Assembly: GCF_006345805.1 (NCBI RefSeq)
Contig: NW_021836179.1
Coordinates: 219,415 to 283,414 of the forward strand
DNA from: Octopus sinensis
Lineage: Eukaryota
Length of the DNA: 64,000 nucleotides
Direction: 5' to 3'
Part shown: in pieces, positions 26,343 through 51,494 of the stretch
Layout: every line of letters starts with the position of its first letter
Numbering within the stretch: the stretch's first letter is position 1
Made by a program: the position numbers and the translations under genes
Notes under the pieces: model-generated
Database searches by the model: none
Told to the model about the DNA's origin: nothing
What the model saw: only the letters and a program-made list of their open reading frames with translations

Positions 26343-26389
<47 letters not shown>

Positions 26390-26464
26390 GCATGCATGTA
26401 TGTATAGGAATGTCTGGTCCGAAAGCAGAGACTTTCATAATCATTGATTCTCCATTAAAAGGCA

Positions 26465-28010: not shown

Positions 28011-28035
28011 TTTTATTTGATTTGATCATAAACGA

Positions 28036-28490: not shown

Positions 28491-28519
28491 GAAAGGTCAA
28501 TAATTTACATCCATTGCTC

Positions 28520-28900
28520 TTTATTCTTTTACTTGTTTCAGTCATTTGACTGCGGCCATGCTGGAGCACCGCCTTTAGTCGAGCAAATCGATCCCGGGAC
28601 TTATTCTTTGTAAGCCCAGTACTTATTCTATCAGTCACTTTTTGCTGAACCACTAAGTGACAGGGACGTAAACACACCAGCATCGGTTGTCAAGCAATGC
28701 TAGGGGTACAAACACACGCATATATATATATATATATACGACAGGCTTCTTTCAGTTTCCGTCTACCAAATCCACTCACAAGGCTTTGGTCGGCCTGAGG
28801 CTATAGTAGAAGACACTTGCCCAAGGTGCCACGCAGTGTGACTGAACCCGGAACCATGTGGTTGGTTAGCAAGCTAGTTACCACACAGCCACTCCTGCGC
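28520..28900 (-). mobile_element. S2 SINE
   Basis: Full head and tail on the minus strand. Confidence 0.85.
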
Positions 28901-29220
28901 CATTGTTGCATATTAAAAAAACCCTCAGAACATTCCAGACAATATAATTCTTTTATTCGTCACTAAATTGATAGACATTCAGAGAAGGGCATTGAGCAAG
29001 GCTTCAATAAATAGGAGGGAACAGGTGAGAACCTAAACCTGGTCAACTCCTACCTGCATACCAAATACATCAAAGTACTCATTGTTAAGTCTCACCAGCC
29101 ATTCATCTCCTAGCTTTTGCAGCAGCTACCATATAAGGGAGTGAGTCTCCCAGCCAAACGCTTCCTCTGGGGTCCAGATAAGTCCATTCTTTACCAGAGA
29201 ATGACTTTGCATTCACAATT

Positions 29221-29608
29221 ATATCAACCACCTCACCAACAACAACACTGAACACCTTTTTGATCTCCATGTGTCCAACACATGTGGACATGCCTACAAA
29301 GTCAGAAAACAACACAGCTCCCATGACTTTCGGAAACATATTTTCACTCTCAGAGTTGCTGAAGCATGGAACAAACTGCCTGCGTCAGTTGTTGACTGCC
29401 ATGATACTGCATCTTTTAAGGCCCTCATGCTTTCCGAAATCCGCCGAAACTACACCTGATTGCCCCCCTTCCATACTCATACACATATGTGTGTCATGAC
29501 TCATGCACTGTTCTTTTCCTGACGCTTGTACATTACCCTATGTACTACACATACACTTTAGATGAGTTGTAGTGCACCTGAGTACACAATGTTTTATTAT
29601 TATTATTT
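29221..29608 (+). mobile_element. CR1/L2-like LINE 3' fragment
   Basis: SNTCGHAYKVRKQ...FTLRVAEAWNKLPASVV is the conserved ORF2 C-terminus of CR1-like LINEs; (ATT)n tail. Confidence 0.85.
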
Positions 29609-30203
29609 TACTATGACTATCCTGCTTCCTGGTGAGAATGTAGTCAATCTGGTTTGTGTGCCACAAGATTCATAGGTGATCATATGGCTGGTGGGCTCCC
29701 CCAAAATCTGAAGTTAGCATGACAAAATCAGAGTGGGGTTGAAAATGATCAGAATATCCTCCAAAAAGTTTCTCAGTTTCATGAAGGTAATTTTCATCTG
29801 GACCCCTAAAAGCATATCTCTGCAGAGTTTAAAGAAAATACCAAGGAATCAATCTGGTGTGGGGCACTAAACTATACTTATGCCTTATGTTCTTCCTTCG
29901 TGGTCTCTTCTATTTTGTACTTGGGGTCATTATTTATTTGACAACTTTACAATATTGCAGTGTATGAAAAGCATTTGAAAGCAAATAAGCAGTAGATATA
30001 CTGCAAAGGATGCAGTATTCAAGAAAGAACAAGGTGTGTGGTTGTTAGGAGGAAGTGGTTTGATATAGAGGTCCATAAATTGCAGAAAGGGAAAAGGTTA
30101 AATAAAAAACCCGAAAGAAATCTAAGTTTTGAAAATGCTTTAATTTCAATTGCACAGAGCAGAAGATCATTAAAGATAAACAGCAAACAAAAAATTGTGG
30201 AAG

Positions 30204-32039
30204 CTAGCTCTTTCCTTTCTCCCCTGTGTGAATAAAATTGTGCTTAGTTAAGTGAATTTTTTGAGAGAATGATTTACCACAGATATCACACTGATATGAT
30301 TTCTCTCCTGTATGAATAAATTTGTGCCTAGTTAAGTGACTTTTTTGAGAGAATGATTTACCACAGATATCACACTGATATGGTTTCTCTCCAGTATAAA
30401 TAACACATTTGTGTTTCTTGAAGCTACTACTATGAGAGAACGATTTACCACAGATATCACAATGATAGGGTTTCTCTCCTGTATGAACACGTATGTGGTC
30501 AGTTAAGTGAATACTTTGAGAAAATACTTTACCACAGATATCACAATGATATGGTTTCAACCCAATATGAAGGCGTTTGTGTTTTATCAAGTTACTATTA
30601 TAAGAGAATGATTTACCACAGACGTCACAATCATATGGTTTCTCTCCTGTATGAATATGTTTGTGTTCCGTTAAGCTAATATTTCGAGAGAATGATTTAC
30701 CACAGACATCACAACGATATGGTTTCTCTCCTGTATGAATATGCTTGTGTTCTGTTAAGCGAATACTTTGAGAGAATGATTTACCACAGACATCACAACG
30801 ATATGGTTTCTCTCCTGTGTGAATACGAATGTGTTTAATTAAGATAACTTTTTGAGAGAATGATTTATCGCAAATATCACACTGATATGGTTTCTCTCCT
30901 GTATGAACACGTTTGTGTATAGTTAAGGCACCATTCTGAGAGAATGGTTTACCGCAGATATCACACTGATATGGCTTCTCTCCTGTATGAGTACGTTTGT
31001 GAGCAGTAACACTACCACGGTTAGTGAATGATTTATCACAAATATCACAGTCATTTGGTTTCTCTCCTGAATGAATAGGTTTAGTTCCATCAATATTTGC
31101 TGTGTATGAGTTACCACAAATATCGAAGTGATATGGTCTCTCTCCTGTATGAGTACGTTTGTGTTTAGATAAGGTACCACTTTCAGGGAATGATTTACCA
31201 CAGATATCACAGTGAAATGGTTTTTCACCTGTATGTGTACGTTTGTGTCTAGCTAAAACACTATTTGAAGAGAATGCTTTACCACAGATATCACAGTGAT
31301 ATGGTCTCTCTCCTGTATGAACACGCTTGTGTATAATTAAGGCACGATTATGACAATACGATACACCACAGATATCACACTGATATGGTTTCTCTCCTGT
31401 GTGAGTACGATTGTGCTTTGTTAAGGCAGTATTTTCAGAGAATGATTTACTACAGATAACACACTGATATGGTTTCTCTCCCGTGTGAATACGTACGTGT
31501 GTAGATAAGTGAGCACTTTGAGAGAATGATTTACCACAGATGTCACAATGATATGGTTTCTCACCTGTATGAATAAGTTTGTGACCAGTTAAGTGACCAC
31601 TTTGAGAGAAAGATTTACCACAGACATCACAGTGATATGGCTTTTCTCCTGTATGAACGCGTTGGTGTGTAGTTAAGTGATTAGTCTGAGAGAATGATTT
31701 ACCACAGATATCACAATGACATGGTTTCTCTTCTGTATGAATACGTTTATGTCTAGTAAAGATACTAATATGAGAAAAGGATTTGCCACATATATCACAA
31801 CGATATGGTGTCTCTCCTGTATGAATATATTTGTGTTTCATTAAGCTACTATTTTGACAGAATGATTTACCACAGACATCACAGTGATATGGTTTATCTC
31901 CTGTATGAATACGTTTGTGCCTAAGAAGGTCACTTTCTTGAGAAAAGGACTTTGTACAAATATCACAGTCATATGATATCATCTTTTTCATCATGTCTTC
32001 TAAGGATATCAATTCTACAATATTCTCTCTCTCTTCCAT
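30204..32039 (-). CDS. ZNF-A: C2H2 zinc-finger protein, 611 aa, ~19 canonical plus 2 degenerate fingers
   Basis: Uninterrupted TGEKP-linked array after a 21-aa leader [15 protein letters not shown]... Confidence 0.92.
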
Positions 32040-32864
32040 TATTTATCCTCTCAGATCCCAGTTTATATATTTTCCTTGCTTTTGTTCGTATGCTTTATTT
32101 TTTCAAATATTTCTTTGGCTGAATCTCTGTCCAGTGTTACCTTTCTTTAGCAACACTTCCATAAATTAAATCCAACTTCAATCAGCAAACAGGTTCCTCT
32201 TCTTCACACTCCAGTCAGGGAGGGTCACAAATTTCGCTAATAATATTATGTCAAAGCAAATGTTTCACAGGAATTCTTCCACGTATTTGTAGAAACAATC
32301 TGATACATCTGTTTCATGGAATAATTTCGTTTAGTCTTTAAAACACGGGAGATATTGAGGATGATTCTTCTGTTGTGCCAATGTCATCTGATGTCCTGAA
32401 ATTATAAAGAAACAACAGCGTAAGATGGTAGAGGCTACTTAAAAAATACAGAAATACGGAAAAAAAATACAAAATAAATAGTTTAAAAACTGTATATAAT
32501 AAGATTAAATGGTACTTCGTGGGAGAGGGGATCATGCTGCTATTTCATTCGTTTCATGTGGGTTTTTTTTGGTCCCCACTGTGGTGTTGTGCCTGTCGTT
32601 TTACTGCCCACTCTATTGTTTTATAACTATTTCTGGGCAATGGTAAAGTGAGCGCACACCACCGAACCGGACCCAGAACCTAGCCATAAACCTTAAGAGG
32701 GTGCACCATAAAAACACAATCAGGAATTTACCTGAATGGTAAAAGCAAATTACCTCCCCTTGTACGGTCCCACACATTCCTCTTTCTATTCGCGGGAACC
32801 CGAGTTAGGGGGTCTTTAAATGGATGAATCTTCCTAATTTTTTGCACACACCGTTTATTTTGTA

Positions 32865-33188
32865 TACTCTTTACTCTTTTACTTGTTTCAGTCATTTGGC
32901 TGCGGCCATGCTGGAGCACCGCCTTTAGTCGAGCAAATCGTCGACCCCGGGACTTATTCTTTGTAATCCCAGTACTTATTGTATCTTTTGCCGAACCGCT
33001 ACGTGACGGGGACGTAAACACACCAGCATCGGTTGTCAAGAAATGTTGGAGAGACAAACATATACACATACAAACACACACACATATACGACAGGCTTCT
33101 TTCAGTTTCCGTCTACCAAATCCACTCACAAGGCATTGGTCGGCCCGGGGCTATAGCAGAAGACACTCGCCCATGATGCCACGCAGTG
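32865..33188 (-). mobile_element. S2 SINE truncated by a deletion and fused to a MITE interior
   Basis: Ends at CCACGCAGTG and joins AAAAGGGTTTCTG; the intact counterpart is 44170-44552. Confidence 0.75.
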
Positions 33189-33538
33189 AAAAGGGTTTCT
33201 GTTATCTTCAGAAATGTAAACAAAGTCACGTGTGTACCTATACCGAAGGATCGCCACATACCCTAACTCTACCCCCCCCCCCCCATATATATTAAAAAAA
33301 CCCACTTTTCTGAAATGTATCTGGTACTTCCTGAAGTACACCGGTACTTATACCGTAAGATCGCCAGAATTAATTTATTTGCTCGAAAAATATTCAATTT
33401 GTGTAAAACAATATTAATTAATTTGTGTATCGCGCATGCGTGAATCTAATCATTTGCGCACGCGCAAGACGTTGTAGGATCGACTACTCTAGACTAGCTA
33501 GCGCGAGTGCGCGCACCGGGACCACTGTTCGCTAGTTG
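33189..33538. mobile_element. Right half of a CG-rich fold-back MITE
   Basis: Matches 45106-45448 of the complete copy. Confidence 0.6.
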
Positions 33539-33804
33539 TGCCCACTTATTGCCGATGCAAGCACAAGAGATGATGAGAATATCACAGAATGGGCGGGGGT
33601 GAAGCGTGTGTAGACACCACCTTACGGTAACACTAAAAGCTAAACCGAACGACGGGGCACAGTAAAAGATCAGATTAAAAAGGGACGATATCGCGAGATC
33701 CCTTACATAATTAAAAGCAGTCTTCGTCACCTTACATTGCCCCTCGCCAACTCCATATCCTTAAGATTTAGTGCCTCTATGTTGGCATTGTACTTAAGTA
33801 CTGC

Positions 33805-34710
33805 AGAAATAGCAGCCAAATCTCGCATTAATCATAGAACCTTTCAGTCACTGCTAGAAATAGCAGCCAAATCTCGCATTAATCATAGAACCTTTCAGTC
33901 ACTGCTAGAAATAGCAGCCAAATCTCGCATTAATCATAGAATCTTTCAGTCACTGCTAGAAATAGCAGCCAAATCTCGCATTAATCATAGAATCTTTCAG
34001 TCACTGCTAGAAATAGCAGCCAAATCTCGCATTAATCATAGAATCTTTCAGTCACAGCTACAAATATATTTCTTTACCCACAAGGAGCTAAACACAGAGG
34101 GGACAAACAAGGACAGACATAGGTATTAAGTCGATTACATCGACCCCAGTGCGTAACTGGTACTTAATTTATTGAACCCGAAAGGATGAAAGGTAAAGTC
34201 GACCTCGGCGGAATTTGAACTCAGAACGAAATACCTATTTCTTTATTACCCACTAGAAATAGCAGCCAAATCACACACAGATCATGGAATCTCTCTTCTA
34301 TAGCTAGAAATAGCAGCCAAATCACACAGATCATGGAATCTCTCTTCTATAGCTAGAAATAGCAGCCAAATCACACACAGACCATAGTCTCTCTTCTATA
34401 GCTAGAAATAGCAGCCAAATCACATACAGATCAGGGAATCTCTCTTCCATAGCTAGAAATAGCAGCCAAGTCACACACAGATCATGTAATCTCTCTTCTA
34501 TAGCTAGAAATAGCAGCCAAATCACACACAGACCATAGAGTCTCTCTTCCATAGCTAGAAATAGCAGCGAAATCATACATAGATCATAGAATCGCTCTTC
34601 CATAGCTAGAAATAGCAGCCAAATCACACACAGATCATGGAATCTCTGTTATATAGCTAGAAATAGCAGCCAAATCCCGCACAAATCAGGGACATCTCTC
34701 GTTCATAAAA
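33805..34710. repeat. 51-bp minisatellite (5 type-1 and ~9 type-2 units) split by an S1 SINE fragment at ~34065-34250
   Basis: Constant core GCTAGAAATAGCAGCCAAAT plus a 31-nt variable part; 17-aa periodic ORFs. Confidence 0.9.
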
Positions 34711-34792
34711 CACAGAAGAGACACAAAGAATCGAGGCGCCAAAGACCGAAAGTCTACAGAATTAAAAACAATGAAAATCTTCTTTGCTTAAT

Positions 34793-34965
34793 ACTTACGG
34801 AAATGTTTCATGAAGGATAGTGTTGTTATATATGTGTGTGTCAGGCAGGTGAGGAATAAACTTCAAGGGCCTATTACAAGGATCGTCATCAGCTGAGAAG
34901 GGAAGATTCTTGTCAGAAACGGATTCGCAGACTTTTCTAGGAAAGTACTTCCAATGCGCATGCGT
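34793..34965 (-). promoter_or_regulatory. Putative ZNF-A promoter/exon 1 with donor CC|GTAAGT (34798-34793) and GCGCATGCG (34956-34964)
   Basis: Donor and the GAAAGTACTTCCAATGCGCATGCG motif are conserved upstream of A' and B'. GCGCATGCG resembles the NRF1 site and GGAAGT an ETS site (inference). Confidence 0.6.
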
Positions 34966-35189
34966 ATGAACAAACTATTTAAATCGATTTCCAGTTAATT
35001 TATTCATGTTTGCGTGCGTGTTAATATCTGTCTTTACTGCTCGTCCAATCAGGTTATTCCACGTCACTGCTCACCACGCCCTTTCCACTTCTATAATCCT
35101 TTCGGTCCATTCTTTGCCATCTTCACCCAAATTATTTCATCTTGGTCGAGATGTTTCCATTTCATCTGCCGCTGTGTTCTGAGTTTAGC

Positions 35190-36310
35190 CCCTTGTGGGT
35201 AGTAAAGAAATAGGTATTTCGTCTGCCGTTACGTTCAGAGTTCAAATTCCGCCGAGGTCGACTTTGTCTTTCATCCTTTCGGGGGTCGATAAATAAAGTA
35301 CCAGTTACCCACTGGGGTCCATGTAATCGACTCAATCCCTTTGTCTGTCCTTGTTTGTCCCCACTATGTTTAGCCCCTTGTGGCTAATAAAGAAATAGGT
35401 ATTTCATCTGCCGCTGTGTTCTGAGTTCAAATTCCGCCGAGGTCGACTTTGCCTTTCATTCTTTCGGGGTCGATAAATTAAGTACCAGTTACCCACTGGG
35501 GTCCATGTAATCGACTCAATCCCTTTGTCTGTCCTTGTTTGTCCCGTCTGTGTTTAGCCCCTTGTGGGTAGTAAAGAAATAGGTATTTCGTCTGCCGTTA
35601 CGTTCAGAGTTCAAATTCCGCCGAGGTCGACTTTGCCTTTCATTCTTTTGGGGTCGATAAATTAAGTACCAGTTACGCACTAGGGTCGATATAATCGACT
35701 TAATACCTATGTCTGTCCTTGTTTGTCCCCTCTGTGTTTAACCCCTTGTGGGTAATAAAGAAATAGGTATTTCGTCTGCCCATACGTTCTGAGTTCAAAT
35801 TCCGCCGAGGTCGACTTTGCCTTTCATCCTTTTGGGGTCGATAAATAAAGTACCAGTTACCCACTGGGATCGATGTAATCGACTGAATCCCTTTGTCTGT
35901 CCCCTCTGTGTTTAGCCCCTTGTGGGCAGTAAAGAAACAGATATTTCCCTTTCATCTGCCGCTGTGTTCTGAGTTCAAATTCCGCCGAGGTCGACTTTGC
36001 CATTCATCCTTTCGGAATCGATAAATTAAGTACCAGTTACCCACTGGGATCGATGTAATCGACTGAATTCCTTTGTCTGTCCCCTCTGTGTTTAGCCCCT
36101 TGTGGGCAGTAAAGAAACAGATATTTCCCTTTCATCTGCCGCTGTGTTCTGAGTTCAAATTCTGCCGAGGTCGACTTTGCCTTTCATACTTTTGGGGTCG
36201 ATAAATAAAGTACCAGTTTCGCCCTGGGATCGATGTAATCGACTTAATCCCTTTGTCTGTCCTTGTTTGTCCCCTCTATGTTTAGCCCCTTGTGGGCAGT
36301 AAAGAAACAG
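35190..36310 (+). repeat. Tandem array of ~6 headless S1 SINE bodies (~180-190 bp unit)
   Basis: Repeated GAGTTCAAATTCCGCCGAGGTCGAC...TTTAGCCCCTTGTGG...AAAGAAA. Confidence 0.85.
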
Positions 36311-36686
36311 ATATTTCATTGACTCATTCTCTGAAAGCAATGTTTTAACTAAACCTGCTTTCATTGATATGAAAACGTAATTATATAAATGTGACACTTC
36401 ATAACAACAACTTTAACAGGCATTTTAAACTTCGCCTGAATTCAGGTCAGTGTTGTAGGTTTTAGCCACAGCAACAATTAATCCATTCGTTTCTATGACA
36501 GAGTCTTCACGCCAATGCTGTTGTAGTGTCTACAAAGGCATTTGTCAATTGTTTGTGTATATTTAATACAAATCTGCAGCTTTCTCAATTATATCATGAA
36601 AAGCAATTTTGGTGAACGTAGTCCAGCACAAACAGCTATCAAGAGTGAAAGACGGGGAGGATTAGAAGGTGGTATATTTATTCGAT

Positions 36687-37425
36687 AGGCGGCGAGCTGG
36701 CAGAATCGTTAGCACGCTGGGCGAAATGCGTTGCTGTTACGTTCTGAGTTCAAATTCCGCCGAGGTCGACTTTGACTTTCATCCTTTTGGGGTCGATAAA
36801 TTAAGTACCAGTTATACACTGAGGTCGACGTAATCAACTTAATCCCTTTGTCCTTGTTTGCTCCCTCTATGTTTAGCCCCTTGTGGGCAATAAAGAAACA
36901 GGTATACTTATTAGATATTACAAACTCATCCCCTCACACATGAACTATTGTTTTTGAACTTTTAGAACGACCTGCTGTGCTTACCTTGGATCGTAGGATG
37001 ACCTGCTGTGCTTGAGGAGACCTATTGAGTCAGGTACATCAATATCAAAATAAACATCAAATGGAAATAGCAGTTGTGATCCCTGTGCCGGTGGCATGTA
37101 AAAAGCACCATCCAAACGTGGCCGATGCCAGCGCAGCCTTGACTGGCTTCTGTGCCAGTGGCACGTAAAAAGCACCAACCGATCGGGCTGCTGCCAGCCT
37201 CCTCTGGCACCTGTGCCGATGGCACGTAAAAAGCACCATCCGATGGGGCTGCTGCCAGCCTCCCCTTGCATGTAAAAAGCACCAACCGATCGTGTCCACT
37301 GCCAGCCTCCCCTTGTATGTAAAAAGCACCGACCGATCGTGGCCGCTGCTAGCCTCCCCCGGCACCTGTGCCGGTGGCACGTAAAATACACCCACTACAC
37401 TCATGGAGTGGTTGGCGTCAAATGC
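36687..37425 (+). mobile_element. S1 SINE (36687-36900) followed by an RTE-type 3' UTR (36965-37425)
   Basis: Family matches; duplicated at 47861-48675. Confidence 0.75.
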
Positions 37426-38085
37426 TCCCATTTAGCATTTTACCAGACAGCTACGTTTCTAATTCTTTAGTCATAACGAATGAAAAGTAGGAGAGAGGGA
37501 CATCTCTGGGCATACTTGTTCAAGCGCTGGTTTTAACTAAAATACAGTCAACAACATTGACTGATTTGTGCCAATAGACAGAAAAGTATGCTCTTAAAAT
37601 AAATTATCTTTCACTGAACATTTTTAACCCTTTCGTTACTATATTTCTGATCAAAATATACCCCTCACGAGTTTCAATTAAATTCTAAAATAATCATGAA
37701 TTTAGACTAGTTTCATTAAACAACTGTAACTTTTTTACTTATCAACATATTTATGTGAAATTTGGAACATAATTAAAGAAAGGGTTCTTAATCGATTATA
37801 TTGCATAACTTTTGTCTCAAAGTGACTGTAATTACAGGTAAACTGAGCAAAAGGTAAAAATATTAAAACTTTGTTTAAACATCACCAAGGAAAATGAATC
37901 ATCAGCTAATATTTAATTCAACAAAGCTAGAATACATTTCTCGCTATAATGTATGGGTCCCTCAGAAACTCTCAGAAAAGAATTGCTTGAACCAGCATTC
38001 CGTTTGTGATATGCTTTTGAAAGGGAATGAAAGTATTCCTAATCTGGACCCTTAAAAACATATCTCTTCAAAGTTTAGAATTTAA

Positions 38086-38265
38086 CCCTTTTGTTACTGT
38101 ATTTCTGTTGAGATGCTCTGTGTTTTAAATATGACAAAGAATTTAGTAAAATAACTTAGTTATCCTTAAGCTAGTGGTAGGAACATAAATTGTGACTAAG
38201 GTTTGAATTCAAAACTTATGAAAACAAGACATTTGTATTACAGAGCCAGTTTGGTAATGAAAGGG
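38086..38265. mobile_element. piggyBac-type MITE, 180 bp, TTAA target sites
   Basis: TTAA-CCCTTTTGTTAC ... GTAATGAAAGGG-TTAA. A further left end of the same type at ~37628 has no visible right end. Confidence 0.75.
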
Positions 38266-38559
38266 TTAAACAAAATAACAAACAATCAGTCTGGTGTGGT
38301 GTACTAAACTATACTTAAGCCTCATGTTTTTCCTTTGGGGTCTCTTCTGTTTTGTACGTGGGGGTCATTGTTTCTGTACATATCTGACAACTTTACAAGA
38401 TTCCTGTGCATGAAAACTCATAACTTATGTTATTGTATAAAATATTTATTGAGTGAAGAATTTAAAACATTCATCATCATCATCATCATCATCATTTAGC
38501 GTCCGTTTTCCATGCTAGCATGGGTTGGATAAACAACAAAGAAAGAAAAGAGGTGAAAA

Positions 38560-39912
38560 TTACAAAAACAAAAGATCCTCACTTTTTCCTTTCTCTCTTC
38601 TATGGATAGATTTGTGTCTGGTCAATTTACTATTTTCAGAGAATGATCTACCACAGATATCACAATGATACGGCTTCTCTCCTGTGTGAATACGTTTGTG
38701 TCCAGTTAAGTGAATACTTTGAGAGAATGATTTACCACAGATATCACAAGGAAATGGTCTCTCACCTGTATGAATACGTCTGTGCTGTGTTAGGTTACTA
38801 TTATTAGAGAATGATTTACCACAGGTATCACAAGGAAACGGTTTCTCACCTGTATGAATACGTATGTGTTCGGTTAAGTGATTGCTTTGTGAGAATGATT
38901 TACCACAGATATCACACTGAAATGGTCTCTTTCCCGTATGAATAGATTTGTGTGTAGTTAAGACACTATTATGGGAGAATGATTTACCACAGATATCACA
39001 CTGATATGGTTTCTCTCCTGTATGAATAGATCTGTGTTTAGTTAAGTGAATACTTTGAGAGAACACTTTACCACAGATATCACAATGGTATGGTCTCTCC
39101 CCCGTATGGACACGTTTGTGTTGTGTTAAGTTAGTATTCTGAAAGAATGATTTACCACAGATATCACACTGACATGGCTTCTCCCCTGTATGAATGTAAT
39201 AGTGTTTTGTTAATGCAATATTTTCAGAGAAAGATTTACCACAGATATCACAATGATATGGTGTCTCTCCTGTATGAATACGTTTGTGTATAACTAAGGT
39301 ACTATTTGCAGAGAATGATTTACCACAGACATCACAGTGATATGGTTTCTCTCCTGTTTGAATACGTCTGTGTTTTGTTAATTGACTACTGTGAGAGAAT
39401 GATTTACCACAGATATCACAGTGATATGGTTTCTCTCCTGTATGAACACGTTTGTGCATAGCTAAGGCACTACTATGGGAGTATGATATACCACAGATAT
39501 CACAATGATATGGCTTTTCCCCTGTATGAATACGATTGTGCTTTGTTAAGGCAGTATTTTCAGAGAATGATTTACCACAGACATCACAATGATATGGTTT
39601 CTCTCCTGTATGAACACGTTTGTGTGTAGATAAGTGAGCACTTTGAGAGAATGATTTACCACAGATATCACACTGATATGGTTTCTCGCCTGTATGAATG
39701 CGTTTGTGTGCAGTTACGTGAACACTTTGAGAGAACGATTTACCACAGATGTCACAAGGATAGGGTTTCTCTCCTGTCTGAAAACGTTTTTGACTAAGTA
39801 GGTTACCCTTTTGAAGGAAGGACCTTGTACACATATCACTGTCACATGATTTCATCTCTTTTGTTATGGGTTCAGAGGAAATCAATTCTACAATATTCTC
39901 TCTCTCATCCAT
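38560..39912 (-). CDS. ZNF-B: C2H2 zinc-finger protein, 450 aa, 14 fingers (finger 5 has H>Q); acceptor and promoter deleted
   Basis: Intact ORF, but the shared 5' UTR stops at ~40145 where propeller sequence begins. Confidence 0.8.
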
Positions 39913-40142
39913 TATTTTTCCTCTCAGATCCCAGTTTATATATTTTCCTTGCTTTTGTTCGTATGCTTTATTTTTTCAAATATTTCTTTGGCTGAATTTC
40001 TGTCCAGTGTTACCTTTCTTTAGCAACACTTCCATAAATTAAATCCAACTTCAATCAGCAAACAGGTTCCTCTTCTTCACACTCCAGTCAGGGAGGTTCA
40101 CAAATTTCACTGATAATATTATGTCAAAGCAAATGTTTCACA

Positions 40143-40736
40143 GGAGATCAACAAGGATTACTATTATTGCAAAGACCCAGACATCTTTGACCCTTATTAT
40201 GTGGATGTGGTTGATATCGAAGATGGGAAATGTAAAGATGAAGTGTGTCGTGGGAAGATGAGGAGATTGGGAAGGTTGGAAGGAGTGGATGATGTGGGAG
40301 TCACATCTTTTGGTGATGTTTTTGTTTTGAGGAGGGTGATGAAGTTGGAGGAGTGCTTTGAAGGGTGGGAAGTTTTTTGTTTTGTGGAATGGTTCAGGGA
40401 AAAGTCTTTGGTGAGGAAGATAAGAATAGAAGGAGGAATAATTTTTGGTCTGGAACATTATCATATTGCAAGACCTCGTCTGACCATAATTGGTGAATGT
40501 GTTTAGATAACAGATTTAGAGAACAATATTTACGAAATACCTCGACATATTGAAGAGGAAACATCTGAAGATGATGAAATCCTGGGATATAAAGATAATT
40601 CAAAATATTTACTCCTCAGAGGGGATGATAATGAAGTCTTTGAAGTTCTTGGTTTGGATGTTTCAGACAATTCTTTGATGGTTTTTGGAATTATTCCTGG
40701 ACATCAATCTTTTGCATTCTTTTATTTTGACAAATA
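40143..40736 (+). pseudogene. Truncated paralog of the last ~200 codons of the propeller gene
   Basis: Aligns to 25479-26074; 5' part missing; premature TAG at 40504-40506 where the long copy has TAT. Confidence 0.9.
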
Positions 40737-41647
40737 AATATTTCCAGAAATATTAAAATTCAATCTTCTTCTTCTTCACGATCATCATCACCATCATCAT
40801 CATCATCGTCATCATCATCATCATCATCATCATCGTCGTCATCAGCGTTGTGTGTGCGTGTGTGCAGTCTGCATCTGACAGTTTTTAACGTTTAATAAGA
40901 ATAGATTGTTGTTGTTGTTGTTGCAGTGACATTCCAACTGCACACACGCACAAACATTGCCTTTCGTCCTCGCAGGGTTGTTGTTGTTGTTGTTGCTGTT
41001 GGGGGTTCATAAAAAAAGAGAAGGACACTTAAAGAGGCATTTATTAAAAGCTTTCCCATGGATGGTCATTTTTCCTGCTAGAAATAGAAACCAAGTGACT
41101 TCAAATTCACTCTATTTTCCATATAAAATTTGAAGGACCGTTAAGAAGCATTTATAAAGGAAATCGGCCTGTATATGGTCTCATTTCATGCCAGAAACAG
41201 TCACTGAAACCTTCACATTTTTGTTTTATCACAAATTAAAATCGAAGGTCAATTTACAAAGCATCCATGACAAATATTGTCCTATAGATGGCCTAACATC
41301 ATGCTAGAAATAGCAGCCAAATACTCTGAAATGTGTCGCATTTCTCATGAAAAAAGTGAAGGACACTTTAAGAAGCAACTCTAAAGATATTGTCCTGTGG
41401 CGGTTTAAGTGTAAAATATTATAAAAGTATGCATCTATGAGTTTTATGTGTTTTAAAAACATAGCAAAGACATGTGTGTATATGTAGGTATATATAAATA
41501 TACATGTGTATAAATGTTCCTTGATGATGTATATGCTTCTTCCCTAATAACTTGCAGAGAAATGGATAAGTTTTGAAAATGCTTTAATTTCAATTGTACA
41601 GACCATAAGATCATTAAAAATAAACAGCAAACAAAAAATTGTGGAAG

Positions 41648-43348
41648 CTAGCTCTTTCCTTTCTCTCCTGTGTGAATAAAATTGTGCCTAGTTAAGTGAC
41701 TTTTTTGAGAGAATGATTTACCACAGATATCACACTGATATGATTTCTCTCCTGTATGAATAAAATTGTGCCTAGTTAAGTGACTTTTTTGAGAGAATGA
41801 TACACCACAGATATCACACTGATATGGTTTCTCTCCAGTATAAATAACACATTTGTGTTTCTTGAAGCTACTACTATGAGAGAACGATTTACCACAGATA
41901 TCACAATGATAGGGTTTCTCTCCTGTATGAACACGTATGTGGTCAGTTAAGTGAATACTTTGAGAAAATAATTTACCACAAATATCACAATGATATGGTT
42001 TCAACCCGATATGAAGGCGTTTGTGTTTTATTAAGTTTCTATTGTCAGAGAATGATTTACCACAGACATCACAATCATATGGTTTCTCTCCTGTATGAGT
42101 GCGTTTGTGTACTGTTAAGCTAATATTTCGAGAGAATGATTTACCACAGACATCACAACGATGTGGTTTCTCTCCTGTATGAGTGCGTTTGTGATCTGTT
42201 AAGCTAATATTTTGAGAGAATGATTTACCACAGACATCACAACGATATGGTTTCTCTCCTGTATGAATATATTTGTGTTCTGTTAAGCGAGTACTTTGAG
42301 AGAATGATATATTGCAAATATCACACTGATATGGTTTCTCTCCTGTATGAACACGTTTGTGTATAGTTAAGGCACTTCTGTGAGAGAATGATTTACCGCA
42401 GATATCACACTGATATGGTTTCTCTCCTGTATGAACACGCTTGTGTTTAGTTAAGGCACAATTCTGAGAGAATGGTTTACCGCAGATATCACACTGATAT
42501 GGTTTCCCTCCTGCATGAAAAGAGTGAAATAGTTTTTCACCTGTATGTGTACGTTTGTGTCTAGCTAAAACACTATTTGAAGAGAATGATTTACCACAGA
42601 TATCACAGTGATATGGTCTCTCTCCTGTATGAACACGCTTGTGTATAATTAAGGCACGATTATGACAATATGATACACCACAGATATCACACCGATATGG
42701 TTTCTCTCCTGTGTGAGTGCGATTGTGCTTTGTTAAGGCATGATTTTCAGAGAATGATTTACCACAGATAACACACTGATATGGTTTCTCTCCTGTGTGA
42801 ATACGTACGTGTGTAGATAAGTGAGCACTTTGAGAGAATGATTGACCACAGATGTCACAATGATATGGTTTCTCACCTGTATGAATAAGTTTGTGACCAG
42901 TTAAGTGACTACTTTGAGAGAAAGATTTACCACAGACATCACAGTGATATGGTTTTTCTCCTGTATGAACGCGTTGGTGTGTAGTTAAGTGATTAGTTTC
43001 AGAGAATGATTTACCACAGATATCACAATGACATGGTTTCTCTTCTGTGTGAATACGTTTATGTCTAGTAAAGATACTAATATGAGAAAAGGATTTACCA
43101 CAGATATCACAATGATATGGTGTCTCTCCTGTATGAATATATTTGTGTTTCATTAAGCTACTGTTGTGACAGAATGATTTACCACAGACATCACAGTGAT
43201 AGGGTTTATCTCCTGTATGAATACATTTGTGCCTTAGAAGGTCACTTTCTTGAGAAAAGGACTTTGTACAAATATCACAGTCATAGGATATCTTTTTCAT
43301 CACGTCTTCTAAGGATATCAATTCTACAATATTCTCTCTCTCATCCAT
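41648..43348 (-). CDS. ZNF-A': C2H2 zinc-finger protein, 566 aa, ~18 canonical plus 1 atypical finger; paralog of ZNF-A
   Basis: Same first 9 and last 5 fingers as ZNF-A; the middle is rearranged. Confidence 0.92.
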
Positions 43349-44169
43349 TATTTTTCCTCTCAGATCCCAGTTTATATATTTTCCTTGCTTTTGTTCGTAT
43401 GCTTTATTTTTTCAAATATTTCTTTGGCTGAATCTCTGTCCAGTGTTACCTTTCTTTAGCAACACTTCCATAAATTAAATCCAACTTCAATCAGCAAACA
43501 GGTTCCTCTTCTTCACACTCCAGTCAGGGAGGGTCACAAATTTCGCTGATAATATTATGTCAAAGCAAATGTTTCACAGGAATTCTTCCACGTATTTGTA
43601 GAAACAATCTGATACATCTGTTCCATGGAATAATTTCGTTTAGTCTTTAAAACACGGCAGATATTGAGGATGATTCTTCTGTTATGTCAAAGTCATCTGA
43701 TGTCCTGAAATTATAAAGAAACAACCGCGTAAGATGGTAGAGGCTACTTAAGAAATACAGAAATACGTGAAAAAAATAGAAAAGAAATAGTTAAAAAACT
43801 GCTTATAATAAGATTAAATGGTACTTCGTGGGAGAGGGGATCCTGCTGCTATTTCATTCGTTTCATGTTGTTTTTTTTTTGGTCCCCACTGTGGTGTTGT
43901 GCCTGTCGTTTTACTGCCCACTCTATTGTTTTATACCTATTTCTGGGCAATGGTAAAGTGAGCGCACACCACCGAACCGGACCCAGAACCTAGCCATAAA
44001 CCTTAAGAGGGTGCACCATAAAAACACAATCAGGAATTTACCTGAATGGTAAAAGCAAATTACCTCCCCTTGTACGGTCCCACACATTCCTTTCTATTCG
44101 CGGGAACCCGAGTTAGGGGGTCTTTAAATGGATGAATCTTCCTAATTTTTTGCACACACCGTTTATTTT

Positions 44170-44552
44170 GTATACTCTTTACTCTTTTACTTGTTTCCGT
44201 CATTTGGCTGCGGCCATACTGGAGCACCGCCTTTAGTCGTGCAAATCGTCGAACCCGGGACTTATTCTTTTGTAAGCCCAGTACTTATTGTATCGTTCTA
44301 CTTTTGCTGAACCGCTACGTGACGGGGACGTAAACACACCAGCATCGGTTGTCAAGCGATGCTAGGGGGACAAACACACACACACACATATATATACGAC
44401 GGGCTTCTTTCAGTTTCCGTCTACCAAATCCATTCACAAGGCACTGGTCGGCCCGGCGCTATAGCCGAAGACACTTGCCCAAGGTGCCACGCAGTGGGAC
44501 TGAACTCGGGACCATGTGGTTGGTTAGCAAGCTACTTACCGCACAGCCACTC
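44170..44552 (-). mobile_element. S2 SINE in intron 1 of ZNF-A'
   Basis: Family match. Confidence 0.85.
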
Positions 44553-44895
44553 CTTAGTATAAAATATATTTAAATGGATGAATCTTTCTAATTTTCTCCA
44601 TACACCATTTACTTTGTATATAATTTCTATTTTAATAACTTTTTTTAAAAATTGCATTTCATTTTCTCGGAGTGGTACGTTTCTAAAGGAGCTCCTCATT
44701 CTCAAATGCTCGCTGAAGGTAATTTGAAAAGATCCCCTCAAAGGAATAACATCGATGCGCTAGTCTGACATTCTGCCTTAATTTTCAGCATAATTTCAAA
44801 TCTACAAGTACGAGGAAAGCAAGTCGAGGCGTATAAATTATACATAAACCCCATTCAATTATACTTTTCACAACAAATTCCTACATAATCCGGTA

Positions 44896-45448
44896 CTACT
44901 AGCGAACAGTAGTCCCGGCATGCTTGCTAGTCGTAAATAGTCGAGCCCAAACAATTTTATTAAATTTAGTAAATCAATTATTTACTTAGTAAAAAGTTTT
45001 AAAAAATGATGGCGATCTTACGGTATAAGTACCGGATACATTTAAAAAAAAGTGTTGTTTTTTTATATATGGGGGGGGGTTAGGATTAGGGTTAGGGGTG
45101 GGAGAAAAGGGTTTCTGTTACCTTCAGATATGTAAACAAAGTCACGTGTGTACCTATACCGAAGGATCGCCCCAACTCTACCCCCCCCCCCCATATATAT
45201 ATTAAAAAAACCCACTTTTCTGAAATGTATCTGGTACTTCCTGAAGTACATCGGTACTTATACCTTAAGATCGCCAGAATTATTTACCTTGTTCGAAAAA
45301 TATTTAATTTGTGTAAAACAATATTAATTAATTTGTTTATCGCGCATGCGTGAATCTAATCATTTGCGCACGCGCAAGACGTTGTAGGATCGACTACTCA
45401 CGACTAGCTAGCGCGAGTGCGCGCACCGGGACCACTGTTCGCTAGTTG
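44896..45448. mobile_element. Fold-back MITE with nested inverted repeats
   Basis: Outer IR CTACTAGCGAACAGTAGTCCCGG / CCGGGACCACTGTTCGCTAGTTG; inner IR GGCGATCTTACGGTATAAGTACC (45011) / GGTACTTATACCTTAAGATCGCC (to 45275); TA on the left flank. Confidence 0.65.
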
Positions 45449-45712
45449 TGCCCACTTATTGCCGATGCAAGCACAAGAGATGATGAGAATATCACAGAAT
45501 GGGCGGGGGTGAAGCGTGTGTAGACACCACCTCACGGTAACACTAAAAGCTAAACCGAACGACGGGGCACAGTAAAAGATCAGATTAAAAAGGGACGATA
45601 TCGCGAGACCCCTTACATAATTAAAAGCAGTCTTCGTCACCTTACATTGCCCCTCGCCAACTCCATATCCTTAAGATTTAGAGACTCTATGTTGGCGTTG
45701 TACTTAAGTAGT

Positions 45713-46615
45713 GCAGAAATAGCAGCCAAATCTCGCATTAATCATAGAACCTTTCAGTCACTGCTAGAAATAGCAGCCAAATCTCGCATTAATCATAGAA
45801 CCTTTCAGTCACTGCTAGAAATATATTTCTTTATTACCCACAAGACGCGACAAACAGGTTAAGTCGATTACATCGACCCCAGTGCGTAACTAGTACTTAA
45901 TTTATCGACCCCTAAAGGATGAAAGGAAAAGTCGACCTCGGCGGAATTTGAACTCAAAACGCAGCGACGGACGAAATACCGTAATGCATTTCGCCCGGTG
46001 TGCTAACGTTTCTGCCAGCTCACACGCAGATCATAGAGTCCCTCTTCCATAGCTAGAAATAGCAGCCAAATCACACACAGATCATAGAATCTCTCTTCTA
46101 TAGCTAGAAATAGCAGCCAAATCTCACACAGATCATGGAATCTCTCTTCTATAGCTAGAAATAGCAGCCAAATCACACACAGGTCATGGAATCTCTCTTC
46201 TATAGCTAGAAATAGCAGCCAAATCACACACAGATCATAGAATCCCTCTTCTATAGCTAGAAATAGCAGCCAAATCACACACAGATCATGGAATCTCTGT
46301 TATATAGCTAGGAATAGCAGCGAAATCACACACAGACCATAGAGTGTCTGTTCCATAGCTAGAAATAGCAGCGAAGTCACACACAGATCATAGAATCTCT
46401 CTTCTATAGCTAGAAATAGCAGCTAAATCACACAGAGATTATGGAATCTCTCGTCTATAGCTAGAAATAGCAGCCAAATCACACACAGATCATAGAATCT
46501 CTCTTCCATAGCTAGAAATAGCAGCTAAATCACACAGACATCATGGCATCTCTCTTCTATAGCTAGAAATAGCAGCCAAATCCCGCACAAATCAGGGACA
46601 TCTCTCGTTCATAAA
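45713..46615. repeat. 51-bp minisatellite (2 type-1 and ~11 type-2 units) split by an S1 SINE at ~45823-46022
   Basis: As at 33805-34710. Confidence 0.9.
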
Positions 46616-46698
46616 ACACAGAAGAGACACAAAGAATCGAGGCGCCAAAGACCGAAAGTCTACAGAATTAAAAACAATGAAATTCTTCTTTGCTTAAT

Positions 46699-46870
46699 AC
46701 TTACGGAAATGTTTCATGAAGGATAGTGTTGTTATATATGTGTGTGTCAGGCAGGTGAGGAATAAACTTCAAGGGCCTATTACAAGGATCGTCATCAGCT
46801 GAGAAGGGAAGATTCTTGTCAGGAACGGATTCGCAGACTTTTCTAGGAAAGTACTTCCAATGCGCATGCG
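46699..46870 (-). promoter_or_regulatory. Putative ZNF-A' promoter/exon 1 with donor at 46704-46699
   Basis: Near-identical to 34793-34965. Confidence 0.6.
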
Positions 46871-47074
46871 TATGAACAAACTATTTAAATCGATTTCCAG
46901 TTAATTTATTCATGTTTGCGTGCGTGTTAATATCTGTCTTTACTGCTCGTCCAATCAGGTTATTCCACGTCACTGCTCACCACGCCCTTTCCACTTCTAT
47001 AATCCTTTCGGTCCATTCTTTGCCATCTTCACCCAAATTATTTCATCTTGGTCGAGATGTTTCCATTTCATCTG

Positions 47075-47485
47075 CCGCTGTGTTCTGAGTTTAGCCCCTT
47101 GTGGGTAGTAAAGAAATAGGTATTTCGTCTGCCGTTACGTTCAGAGTTCAAATTCCGCCGAGGTCGACTTTGTCTTTCATCCTTTCGGGGGTCGATAAAT
47201 AAAGTACCAGTTACCCACTGGGGTCCATGTAATCGACTCAATCCCTTTGTCTGTCCTTGTTTGTCCCCACTATGTTTAGCCCCTTGTGGCTAATAAAGAA
47301 ATAGGTATTTCATCTGCCGCTGTGTTCTGAGTTCAAATTCCGCCGAGGTCGACTTTGCCTTTCATACTTTTTGGGGTCGATAAATAAAGTACCAGTTTCG
47401 CACTTGGGTCGATGTAATCGACTTAATCCCTTTGTCTGTCCTTGGTTGTCCCCTCTGTTTAGCCCCTTGTGGGCAGTAAAGAAAC
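47075..47485 (+). repeat. Tandem S1 bodies, 2 copies
   Basis: Shorter paralog of 35190-36310. Confidence 0.8.
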
Positions 47486-47860
47486 AGATATTTCATTGAC
47501 TCATTCTCTGAAAGCAATGTTTTAACTAAACCTGCTTTCATTGATATGAAAACGTAATTATATAAATGTGACACTTCACAACAACTTTAACAGGCATTTT
47601 AAACTTCGCCTGAATTCAGGTCAGTGTTGTAGGTTTTAGCCACAGCAACAATTAATCCATTCGTTTCTATGACAGAGTCTTCACAGCAATGCTGTTGTAG
47701 TGTCTACAAAGGCATTTGTCAATTGTTTGTGTATATTTAATACAAATCTGCAGCTTTCTCAATTATATCATGAAAAGCAATTTTGGTGAACGTAGTCCAG
47801 CACAAACAGCTATCAAGAGTGAAAGACGGGGAGGATTAGAAGGTGGTATATTTATTCGAT

Positions 47861-48675
47861 AGGCGGCGAGCTGGCAGAATCGTTAGCACGCCGGGCGAAA
47901 TGCGTAGACGTATTTCGTCTGCCATAACGTTGCGAGTTCCAATTCCGCCGAGGTCGACTTTGACTTTCATCCTTTCGGGGTCGATAAATTAAGTACCAGC
48001 TATACACTGAGGTCGATGTAATCAACTTAATCCCTTTGTCCTTGTTTGTTCCCCCTATGTTTAGCCCCTTGTGGGCAATAAAGAAACAGGTATACTTATT
48101 AGATATTACAAACTCATCCCCTCACACATGAACTATTGTTTTTGAACTTTTAGAACGACCTGCTGTGCTTACCTTGGATCGTAGGGTGACCTGCTGTGTT
48201 TGAGGAGACCTATTGAGTCAAGTACATCAATATCGAAATAAACATCAAATGGAAATAGCAGTTGTGATACCTGTGCCGGTGGCACGTAAAAAGCAGCACC
48301 CAAACGTGGCCGATGCCAGCGCAGCCTTGACTGACTTCTGTGCCAGTGGCACGTAAAAAGCACCAACCGAACGTGGCCGGTGGCACGTAAAAAGCACCAC
48401 CCAAACGTGGCCGATGCCAGCGCAGCCTTGACTGACCTCTGTGCCAGTTGCACGTAAAAAGCACCAACCAATCGTGGCCACTGCCAGCCTCCCCTGGCAC
48501 CTGTGCCGGTGCCACGTAAAAAGCACCATCCAAACGTGGCCAATGCCAGCGCAGCCTTGACTGGCTTATGTGCCAGTGACACGTAAAAAGCACCAACCGA
48601 TTGTGGCCGCTGCCAGTCTCCCCCGGCACGTAAAATGCACCCACTACACTCACGGAGTGGTTGGCGTCAAGTGCT
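47861..48675 (+). mobile_element. S1 SINE followed by an RTE-type 3' UTR
   Basis: Paralog of 36687-37425 with a different internal repeat arrangement. Confidence 0.75.
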
Positions 48676-49328
48676 CCCAATTACCATTTTACCAGACAGC
48701 TATGTTTCTAACTCTGTTGTCATAACAAATGAAAAGTAGGAGAGAGGGACATCTCTGGGCAAACTTGTTCAAGCGCTGGTTTTCACTAAAATACAGTCAA
48801 CAACATTGACTGATTTGTGCCAATAGACAGAAAAGTATGCTCTTAAAATAAATTATCTTTCACTGAACATTTTTAACCCTTTCGTTACTATATTTCTGAT
48901 CAAAATATACCCCTCACGAATTTCAATTAAATTTTAAAATAATCATGAATTTAGACTAGTTTCATTAAACAACTGTAACTTTTTTACTTATCAACATATG
49001 ATATTTGGAACATAATTAAAGAAAGGGTTCTTAATCGATTATATTGCATAACTTTTGTCTCAAAGTGACTCTAATTACAGGTAAACTGAGCAAAAGGTAA
49101 AAATATTAAAACTTTGTTTAAACATCACCAAGGAAAATGAATCATCAGCTAATATTTAATTTAACAAAGCTAGAATACATTTCTCGTTATAATGTATGGG
49201 TCCCTCAGAAACTCTCAGAAAAGAACTGCTTGAACCAGTATTCCGTTTGTGATATGCTTCTGAAAGGGAATGAAAGTATTCCTAATCTGGACCCTTAAAA
49301 ACATATCTCTTCAAAGTTTATAATTTAA

Positions 49329-49540
49329 CCCTTTTGTTACTGTATTTCTGTTGAGATGCTCTGTGTTTCTTTCAATCCCTTTAAATATAAACAAAGAATT
49401 TAGCAAAATAACTTCGTTATCATTAAGCTAGTGTTAGGAACATAAATTGTGATAAAGGTTTGGTGGAAGATTTGAATTCAAAACTTATGAAAACAAGACA
49501 TTTGTACTACAGAGCCAGAGACGGTTTGGTAATGAAAGGG
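49329..49540. mobile_element. piggyBac-type MITE, 212 bp, TTAA target sites
   Basis: Paralog of 38086-38265 retaining segments deleted there. Confidence 0.75.
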
Positions 49541-49778
49541 TTAAACAAAATAACAAACAATCAGTCTGGGGTGGGGCACTAAACTATACTTAAGCCTCAT
49601 GTTCTTCCTTTGGGGTCTCTTCTGTTTTGTACTTGGGGGTCATTGTTTCTGTACATATTTGACAACTTTACAAGATTCCTGTGCATGAAAAAGACATAAC
49701 TTATGTTATTGAATAAAATATTTATTGAGTGAAGAATTTAAAACATTATAAACAATAAAGAAAGAAAAGAGGTGAAAA

Positions 49779-51131
49779 TTACAAAAACAAAAGATCCTCG
49801 CTTTTTCCTTTCTCTCTTCTATGGATAGATTTGTGTCTGGTCAATTTACTATTTTCAGAGAATGATCTACCACAGATATCACAATGATACGGCTTCTCTC
49901 CTGTGTGAATACGTTTGTGTCCAGTTAAGTGAATACTTTGAGAGAATGATTTACCACAGATATCACAAGGAAATGGTCTCTCACCTGTATGAATACGTCT
50001 GTGCTGTGTTAGGTTACTATTATTAGAGAATGATTTACCACAGGTATCACAAGGAAACGGTTTCTCACCTGTATGAATACGTATGTGTTCGGTTAAGTGA
50101 TTGCTTTGTGAGAATGATTTACCACAGATATCACACTGAAATGGTCTCTTTCCTGTATGAATAGATTTGTGTGTAGTTAAGACACTATTATGGGAGAATG
50201 ATTTACCACAGATATCACACTGATATGGTTTCTCTCCTGTATGAATAGATTTGTGTTTAGTTAAGTGAATACTTTGAGAGAACACTTTACCACAGATATC
50301 ACAATGGTATGGTCTCTCCCCTGTGTGGACACGTTTGTGTTGTGTTAAGTTAGTATTCTGAAAGAATGATTTACCACAGAAGTCACACTGATATGGCTTC
50401 TCCCCTGTATGAATGTAATAGTGTTTTGTTAATGCAATATTTTCAGAGAAAGATTTACCACAGATATCACAATGATATGGTGTCTCTCCTGTATGAATAC
50501 GTTTGTGTATAACTAAGGTACTATTTGCAGAAAATGATTTACCACAGACATCACAGTGATATGGTTTCTCTCCTGTATGAATACGTCTGTGTTTTGTTAA
50601 TTGACTACTTTGAGAGAATGATTTACCACAGATATCACAGTGATATGGTTTCTCTCCTGTATGAACACGTTTGTGCATAGCTAAGGCACTACTATGGGAG
50701 TATGATATACCACAGATATCACAATGATATGGCTTTTCCCCTGTATGAATACGATTGTGCTTTGTTAAGGCAGTATTTTCAGAGAATGATTTACCACAGA
50801 CATCACAATGAAATGGCTTTTCTCCTGTATGAACACGTTTGTGTGTAGATAAGTGAGCACTTTGAGAGAATGATTTACCACAGACATCACACTGATATGG
50901 CTTTTCTCCTGTATGAATGCGTTTGTGTGTAGTTACGTGAACACTTTGAGAGAACGATTTACCACAGATGTCACAAGGATAGGGTTTCTCTCCTGTCTGA
51001 AAACGTTTTTGACTAAGTAGGTTACCTTTTTGAAGGAAGGACCTTGTACACATATCACTGTCATATGAACTCAACTCTTTTGTTATGGGTTCAGAGGAAA
51101 TCAATTCTACAATATTCTCTCTCTCATCCAT
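49779..51131 (-). CDS. ZNF-B': C2H2 zinc-finger protein, 450 aa, 14 intact fingers
   Basis: Colinear paralog of ZNF-B with acceptor, intron and promoter retained. Confidence 0.92.
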
Positions 51132-51494
51132 TATTTATCCTCTCAAATTCCAGTTTATATATTCTTCTTGCTTTTGTTTGTATGCTTTATTTTTTACAAA
51201 TATTTCTTTGGCTGAATCTCTGTCCAGTGTTACCTTTCTTTAGCAACACTTCCATAAATTAAATCCAACTTCAATCAGCAAACAGGTTCCTCTTCTTCAC
51301 ACTCCAGTCAGGGAGGGTCACAAATTTCGCTGATAATATTATGTCAAAGCAAATGTTTCACAGGAATTCTTCCACGTATTCATAGAAACAATCGGATACA
51401 TCTGTTTCATGGAATAATTTCGTTTAGTCTTTAAAACACGGCAGATATTGAGGATGATTCTTCTGTTGTGTCAATGTCATCTGATGTTCTGAAA

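Follow-up and report, generated by a model that had tools for sequence, protein, structure and literature searches.

The element under study lies at positions 40143-40736 of a 64,000-nucleotide stretch of Octopus sinensis DNA (hereafter the window), where a preliminary description made from the letters alone had seen a paralog of a variable recognition receptor. The element is probably a dead duplication fragment of an octopod family of multi-propeller proteins, in which a face of loops appears to be under diversifying selection and loop variants appear to be shuffled among the paralogs. The flagged copy (copy B) is the dead fragment; the object of interest is its parent family, represented in the window by gene A (20524..26074, + strand).

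Copy B (40143..40737, + strand) is a 5'-truncated relic consisting of the last 197 codons of the gene and the family TAA stop. When the gene A open reading frame (ORF) was searched against the window with tblastn, two matches were obtained in total, and the only one besides the ORF itself was 40144-40734, covering residues 1242-1438 alone. Homology to gene A upstream of copy B was looked for within the window by self-comparison and tblastn, and none was found. The homologous segment of gene A (25478..26074, + strand) encodes the C-terminal half of the last propeller. The 5' boundary of copy B falls at a tandem-duplication junction (40143..40145), mapped by three-way comparison of 40086-40175, 51306-51395 and 25421-25510. 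There, with a GGA microhomology, the end of the first duplication unit (...CACAGGA) is fused to GA(A/T)CAACAA in the interior of the coding sequence, while the end of the second unit runs into unrelated DNA. Because the junction lies inside coding sequence, copy B was born without the first ~1,240 codons.

The block 25806-25922, reported earlier as nearly identical to 40469-40585, indeed differs from it at exactly 1 of 117 nt. The meaning of that single difference (25843 T, 40506 G) had gone unremarked: it turns a TAT codon into an in-frame TAG in copy B (40504..40506, + strand), 120 codons into the fragment, and TAT is present in all nine of the other copies. Truncated at its 5' end and interrupted by a premature stop, copy B therefore cannot be a receptor, and the assignment of 40143-40736 as a receptor paralog had to be abandoned. 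Changes were polarised with eight outgroup paralogs. Those confined to the B lineage comprised 11 nonsynonymous, 3 synonymous and 1 nonsense substitutions and one 9-nt deletion, with a nonsynonymous share indistinguishable from the neutral value of 0.738 (P=0.42). Copy B thus combines partial homology ending at a duplication junction with a disabled reading frame and neutral-looking substitutions. Judged from its sequence, it is non-functional and an ordinary duplication-derived truncated pseudogene. It resembles other pseudogenes truncated at duplication junctions in its co-duplicated flanks, in the breakpoint inside the parental coding sequence, in the absent 5' part and in the acquired stop; it is unusual only in having a parent from a hypervariable family, so that the relic keeps another combination of loop variants.

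The two duplication units were delimited from colinear self-BLAST blocks. Unit 1 (25480..40145, ~14.7 kb) holds the gene A 3' end, a spacer and two C2H2 zinc-finger genes, and unit 2 (40143..51365, ~11.2 kb) runs from copy B to the point at which it ceases to match unit 1. Self-comparison showed the units to be colinear, each with a 3' gene segment, a spacer and two minus-strand zinc-finger genes, with a substitution divergence of 1.7-5% between them. A segment of 11-15 kb was duplicated in tandem and, as one breakpoint fell within the coding region of the intronless gene (~1,850 codons), unit 2 opens with an orphan copy of the last 197 codons, which later acquired the TAG, the 9-nt deletion and substitutions at a neutral ratio. 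Two insertions are present in unit 1 and absent from unit 2: 26115-26532, made of microsatellites and a tRNA-like fragment (GGGAATCGAACC), and ~27299-30122, made of ~2.8 kb of repeats.

Gene A is an intronless coding sequence of ~1,850 codons that starts at the ATG at 20524 and carries two 1-nt deletions as assembled. Its long open frame spans 21758-26074 (+ strand) and its terminal 1,460 codons are open; the 5' ~390 codons are out of frame with this terminal ORF. The first frameshift (21312..21313, + strand) is a missing G that is present in two O. vulgaris paralog loci (L002 and L003), and the second (21695..21696, + strand) is a missing G relative to the same loci (GGTGGTG to GGTGTG). The two frameshifts represent either recent pseudogenisation or assembly error. 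Several further features of the gene were recorded. It is a mosaic: the 5' half (20564-23164) is 97% identical to L003 and L002, and the 3' half (23247-26315) is just 90-94% identical to any O. vulgaris paralog compared. Codon 25568-25570 of gene A, within an otherwise invariant DGKCKDEVC motif, reads TAT (Tyr); in copy B and in each of the eight O. vulgaris paralogs it is TGT (Cys). At ~23160-23250, between propellers, lies a Gly/His/Ser-rich low-complexity insert (GGGGHGGDGSISSSDG...) whose length differs by paralog and whose alignment is unreliable.

Protein searches with the family matched uncharacterised proteins of Octopus vulgaris, O. sinensis, O. bimaculoides and Argonauta hians only, mostly of 1,000-2,100 aa and none with a Pfam domain proper to the family. 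The O. vulgaris family genes are single-exon, and most members lie on one 29-Mb chromosome. When the last 400 aa were compared by HMMER, exhaustively, with 1.84 billion cluster representatives, 15 matches were obtained, all of the named ones from Octopus or Argonauta, and no relative of the C-terminal propeller appeared outside the octopod family. The family is octopod-only. Its proteins are ~1,800 aa long and contain several beta-propellers each, and its paralogs, which number dozens, lie in clusters together with zinc-finger genes. No Pfam domain scored above cut-off in the window ORF, both halves of copy B, two O. vulgaris proteins or one Argonauta protein; matches below cut-off were to SGL (E=0.023) and DUF4934 (E=0.05-0.18). 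No hydrophobic N-terminus (signal peptide) or membrane helix was evident in the family proteins, and any recognition would therefore probably be intracellular. In the O. vulgaris locus of protein P0005 (L004), a second, degenerate partial family copy (20137-22930 of that locus) was found ~4.5 kb downstream of the intact gene, where it has been incorporated in a zinc-finger gene model. Relics of this truncated kind therefore seem to be common in the O. vulgaris cluster.

The terminal propeller proposed earlier was recovered in an AlphaFold2 (AF2) model of the last 400 aa built from the family alignment, which is all-beta (predicted local distance difference test, pLDDT, 78; predicted template modelling score, pTM, 0.80). 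Among the 50 top matches listed by Foldseek against the PDB, at probability 1.0, nearly all were propellers (WD40, NHL and clathrin N-terminal domain), with low TM-scores (0.2-0.44). The C-terminal 365 aa are accordingly predicted to form a beta-propeller, a fold of radially arranged four-stranded antiparallel blades. The N-terminal half of this last propeller is nearly invariant. In its C-terminal half, the nonsynonymous changes per codon, counted loop by loop over 13 loops (205-206 to 377-379 of the model), were 0.0, 2.2, 0.4, 1.1, 0.2, 4.3, 0.5, 2.2, 0.0, 1.6, 0.35, 2.0 and 0.33, an alternation of hypervariable and invariant loops without exception.

Six hypervariable loops (all + strand; sequences given for gene A) were delimited in this way. 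Loop 1 (DDPDI; 25508..25522 in gene A, 40171-40185 in copy B) has 2.2 nonsynonymous changes per codon, and loop 2 (RCGRLEGDEG; 25601..25630 and 40264-40284) contains the 9-nt deletion of copy B. Hairpin tip 3 (KKEGDGIWED; 25688..25717 and 40342-40374) is the most changeable, with 4.3 changes per codon, and varies in length family-wide. Loop 4 (IDEPFYDLEYCIPRP; 25769..25813 and 40426-40476) and loop 6 (RKEDNEVS; 25955..25978 and 40618-40641) were assigned from the per-loop counts, and loop 5 (DLENN; 25850..25864 and 40513-40527) is variable family-wide and the same in A and B. Because successive loops of an up-and-down beta meander emerge on opposite faces and the variable loops are every second one, the six should share one face; from the topology of the model a single face is probable. 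The hypervariable face of the preliminary description is therefore probable for the family, in that loops and hairpin tips hold most of the variation and their alternation in the model implies one face, and is lost for copy B, which is dead. A second AF2 model (ORF residues 540-1039; pLDDT 73) also gave a beta-propeller, with a nearly complete alternation of loops across residues 598-897, which covers 23549-24364 of the window. This second hypervariable face of gene A (23549..24364, + strand; ORF residues 598-869; omega ~2.1, P=2e-6) shows that the terminal propeller is not the only hypervariable one. The fast sites are thus the loops of the C-terminal half of the last propeller and of one internal propeller.

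Rates were referred to the duplicated non-coding sites of the same two units, 3.7% of which differ among 4,705 aligned (transition/transversion ratio 1.22). The six amino-acid patches singled out between A and B are each present as listed, indels included; 26% of their nucleotides differ (proportion of nonsynonymous differences, pN, 0.285), against 2.8% in the blocks between, so that the coding patches do exceed the adjacent non-coding DNA numerically. The non-coding flank pointed to earlier (26615-26760 against 40843-40980) likewise has few differing sites, with 2 mismatches and 8 gap columns in 146. Over the whole fragment, A and B differ with dN 0.108 and dS 0.048. Their differences are clustered (dispersion index 2.42 in 15-nt bins against 0.91 in shuffles, P<0.0002), and the four indels between them (-9, +3, +3 and +3 nt) are all in frame. 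These indels were considered as a sign that copy B had formerly been functional; this was rejected, as two of the three B-side length states are also found in other paralogs, the 9-nt deletion being the sole state unique to copy B.

For a family-wide estimate, eight O. vulgaris paralog loci were added and codon alignments of 9-10 sequences were prepared. Changes were counted per codon column by minimum spanning tree, which needs no phylogeny, with NG86 sites, and the nonsynonymous-to-synonymous rate ratio (omega) was computed both under equal rates and under the window's own neutral spectrum. Omega exceeded 1 at ORF A residues 1242-1438 (2.03 under equal rates, P=8e-4; 2.9 under the neutral spectrum, P=2e-7) and at residues 590-865 (1.39, P=0.03; 2.1, P=2e-6), and was 0.39 and 0.56, respectively, at residues 139-450 in the N-terminal part. 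With codons differing by a single nucleotide only, omega for residues 1242-1438 was 3.4 (P=9e-8). With more paralogs, the excess of replacements implied by the earlier comparison of two copies thus became an omega of 2.0 under equal rates and ~2.9-3.4 under the neutral spectrum (P from 8e-4 to 9e-8). Every paralog was hypervariable in the same patches, and the blocks between were almost invariant. Among changes confined to the A lineage, 13 of 13 were nonsynonymous (P=0.02).

Residues 1242-1438 were also divided into loops and strands by the secondary structure of the predicted model, a partition independent of the variation. Omega was 2.5 in loops (P=0.002) against 1.5 in strands (not significant), and synonymous density was equal (0.19 against 0.175), which speaks against the loops being locally hypermutated or of older origin. 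Elevated dN/dS is thus concentrated in predicted surface loops of the putative binding domain. Every second inter-strand loop takes replacements and in-frame indels at ~2-3.5x the neutral rate, with strands and intervening loops held almost invariant, and the variable loops may form one ligand-binding face under diversifying selection.

Many of the variants are not private to single paralogs. Both states were found in other paralogs at 25 of the 53 nucleotide differences between A and B, and the same variants occur in many combinations across paralogs, synonymous sites included. Four-gamete violations were seen at 58% of informative coding site pairs and at 16% in the flank (minimum number of recombination events, Rm, 90). 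Among 18 purely synonymous informative sites they affected 51% of pairs, and with a proportion of synonymous differences (pS) of 0.056 recurrent mutation is implausible there. In the 3' non-coding flank, gene A lies at distances of 0.027 from L003, 0.031 from L006 (a further O. vulgaris locus) and 0.050 from copy B; a recent sister relationship of A and B was thereby ruled out. Patch distances between any two copies span 0.13-0.26, with that of A and B (0.263) at the upper limit, and patch distance showed no correlation with flank distance (r=-0.03). The pre-existing states and the reticulate history together indicate that much of what had been read as rewriting between A and B is a reshuffling of variants that were already there. 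The mechanism by which a selected pool of loop variants is reassorted would be gene conversion or recombination between paralogs, in short and frequent exchanges.

Patchwork gene conversion, which had been named earlier as something to check, was weighed on its own, as conversion tracts from older paralogs that make the patches with no positive selection. The shared variants, the four-gamete violations that reach synonymous sites and the decoupling of patch from flank distances are all as such an account expects, and the A/B pS by NG86 is 0.16 in the patches against 0.011 in the blocks; the former value is inflated by multi-hit codons, and the family-wide synonymous densities of loops and strands were used instead. 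Their equality is left unexplained by conversion alone, as is the ~3x nonsynonymous excess of the pool over neutral expectation, which reshuffling would not create, and none of the paralogs examined carries a donor-like identical patch. Conversion without selection is therefore considered improbable, though it is the most serious of the alternatives, and conversion is taken as part of the best explanation and not as its replacement.

Neutral decay was the next alternative, in which B, and perhaps A, are pseudogenes whose unconstrained loops diverge with the help of slippage in purine-rich low-complexity sequence. The stop in B, the two frameshifts in A and a whole-gene omega of ~1 would all fit, the patch DNA is G/A-rich and indel-prone, and differences are clustered in the duplicated non-coding flank as well (dispersion index 1.83 in 15-nt bins). 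Decay of copy B can account for little of the divergence, since just 15 of the 53 A/B differences are B-specific, and the 26% divergence of the patches is ~7x the neutral 3.7% of the same duplication. An omega significantly above 1, instead of equal to it, the invariance of every other loop and the in-frame length of four of four indels are likewise not expected from decay, and we regard it as unlikely.

A functional copy B, serving as an alternative 3' exon or a small gene, would be consistent with the AG dinucleotide ahead of the junction (cacag|GA) and with indels that are all multiples of 3 relative to A. Its frame is stopped by the TAG after 120 codons, its first in-frame ATG does not occur before fragment residue 38, upstream of it lies the promoter side of a zinc-finger gene on the minus strand, the junction is the duplication breakpoint, and the nonsynonymous-to-synonymous ratio of the B lineage is neutral; a function for copy B is thus very unlikely. 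Least likely of all is an artefact of assembly or alignment (collapsed or chimeric paralogs, or misaligned indel-rich patches), because, hard as tandem arrays of similar genes are to assemble and uncertain as the alignment is at patch indels, the same patches vary in eight loci of an independent chromosome-level O. vulgaris assembly, omega stays at 3.4 with single-nucleotide codon differences only, and misaligned codons would push omega near 1 and not above it.

Several points weigh against selection on a shuffled loop face. Omega over the whole gene is ~1.0, a value that averages over constrained, selected and possibly decaying stretches. The assembled gene A contains frameshifts, and many of the O. 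vulgaris gene models are split, so that part of the family may be decaying. The statistics come from 9-10 sequences and a counting method of our own, as opposed to likelihood site models that account for recombination, and the distance dependence of the recombination signal is weak (P=0.046). The single face was derived from strand order in a predicted model, as opposed to measured coordinates, and variation extends into the ends of several strands.

Known systems were compared with the family. In Podospora anserina, the HNWD genes (het-d, het-e, het-r and nwd) encode non-self-recognition proteins of the STAND class with WD40 propellers, in which a few positions of the propeller surface are hypervariable under positive diversifying selection and paralogs undergo exchange and concerted evolution (PMC1805685, PMC2873952). 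This is the closest parallel, the octopus family being likewise multigene with a C-terminal beta-propeller, hypervariable surface positions and combinatorial variants. The two differ in that octopus variability is in loops of non-repetitive blades, whereas in HNWD it resides in WD repeats that are near-identical and change in number. Octopus proteins also have several propellers, and recognition has been demonstrated in the fungus, while in octopus it would be a putative function. Neither a STAND/NACHT module nor a HET or N-terminal effector domain was detected by Pfam in the window ORF, the two O. vulgaris proteins or the Argonauta protein, and the octopus family is therefore not a member of HNWD. 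The WD40 repeat (PF00400) gave no match at E up to 1, and the resemblance is at fold level only.

The B30.2 (SPRY) domains of TRIM5alpha and the finTRIM proteins offer a second comparison. Their beta-rich scaffold is otherwise conserved, but short loops (v1-v4) vary, with in-frame indels, and evolve under positive selection, and their genes are tandemly duplicated and intracellular in action, often with pseudogenes alongside, as in the octopus family. They differ in fold (a beta-sandwich, against the predicted propeller), the octopus proteins are without RING, B-box or coiled-coil, and a link with viruses is known for the TRIM side only. The NHL propellers of Brat and TRIM71/LIN-41 are alike in predicted fold, and the octopus sequences contain motifs similar to NHL blades, such as VVCEKANNGNVKIFDEDGQLL. 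At the sequence level, the PDB chains that the family profile matched best were the NHL domains of Brat and TRIM71 (sub-threshold, E 0.02-0.1), which are also in the Foldseek list. The NHL repeat (PF01436) itself was not matched in the octopus proteins scanned, and TRIM-NHL propellers are highly conserved RNA binders, unlike the hypervariable octopus loops.

A literature search found no paper describing this octopod propeller family. Known lineage-specific expansions in cephalopods are mainly those of protocadherins, zinc fingers and G-protein-coupled receptors, and to our knowledge cephalopods have no adaptive immunity. The octopod family bears the marks of a recognition repertoire: hypervariable loops that probably share a face, an omega higher than 1, indels that keep the frame, and mosaicism among the paralogs. 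The immune or parasite-recognition role suggested earlier is conjectural. If the signature holds, the family would be a candidate new class of animal propeller-based binding proteins and an entry to octopus host-parasite or genome-defence biology; the proteins may be soluble intracellular binders with a diversified repertoire of targets. A bolder and doubtful extension would make them a germline-encoded, octopod-only intracellular recognition repertoire (e.g. for viruses, transposons or self/non-self), with two faces kept diverse by selection and relics such as 40143-40736 as donor cassettes for gene conversion, by analogy with the pseudo-V genes and silent antigen cassettes that act as donors elsewhere.

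The co-duplicated zinc-finger genes served as an internal control. The copies at 38560..39912 (- strand) and 49779..51131 (- strand), in units 1 and 2, respectively, encode 450 aa each; 24 of their 1,353 nt differ and no indel separates them (pS 0.045, pN 0.011, ratio 0.25). Both copies are under purifying selection. Further zinc-finger ORFs were found at 30204-32039, 41648-43348, 55814-58177 and 3643-4461.

The window is AT-rich eukaryotic DNA with microsatellites. A 57-bp tandem satellite (24 copies, 96% identity) occupies 6595-7963 and contains a mechanical minus-strand ORF of 283 aa. An interspersed repeat of ~390 bp, probably similar to short interspersed elements, is present in at least seven copies of 86-94% identity (5049-5441, 28517-28896, 32865-33188, 44173-44554, 53949-54334, 59037-59428 on the - strand, and 62131-62524) and also occurs in O. 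vulgaris loci. Arrays of a 51-bp tandem repeat (5-13 copies) lie at 33800-34700, 46020-46606 and 52968-53627, in both duplication units and downstream. No tRNA was called by ARAGORN across the window, though two repeats hold tRNA-like T-arm motifs. A 184-bp tandem repeat at 35178-36319, 47089-47496 and 60720-61354 (the last on the - strand) has such a motif (GTTCAAATTCCGCC) in its unit.

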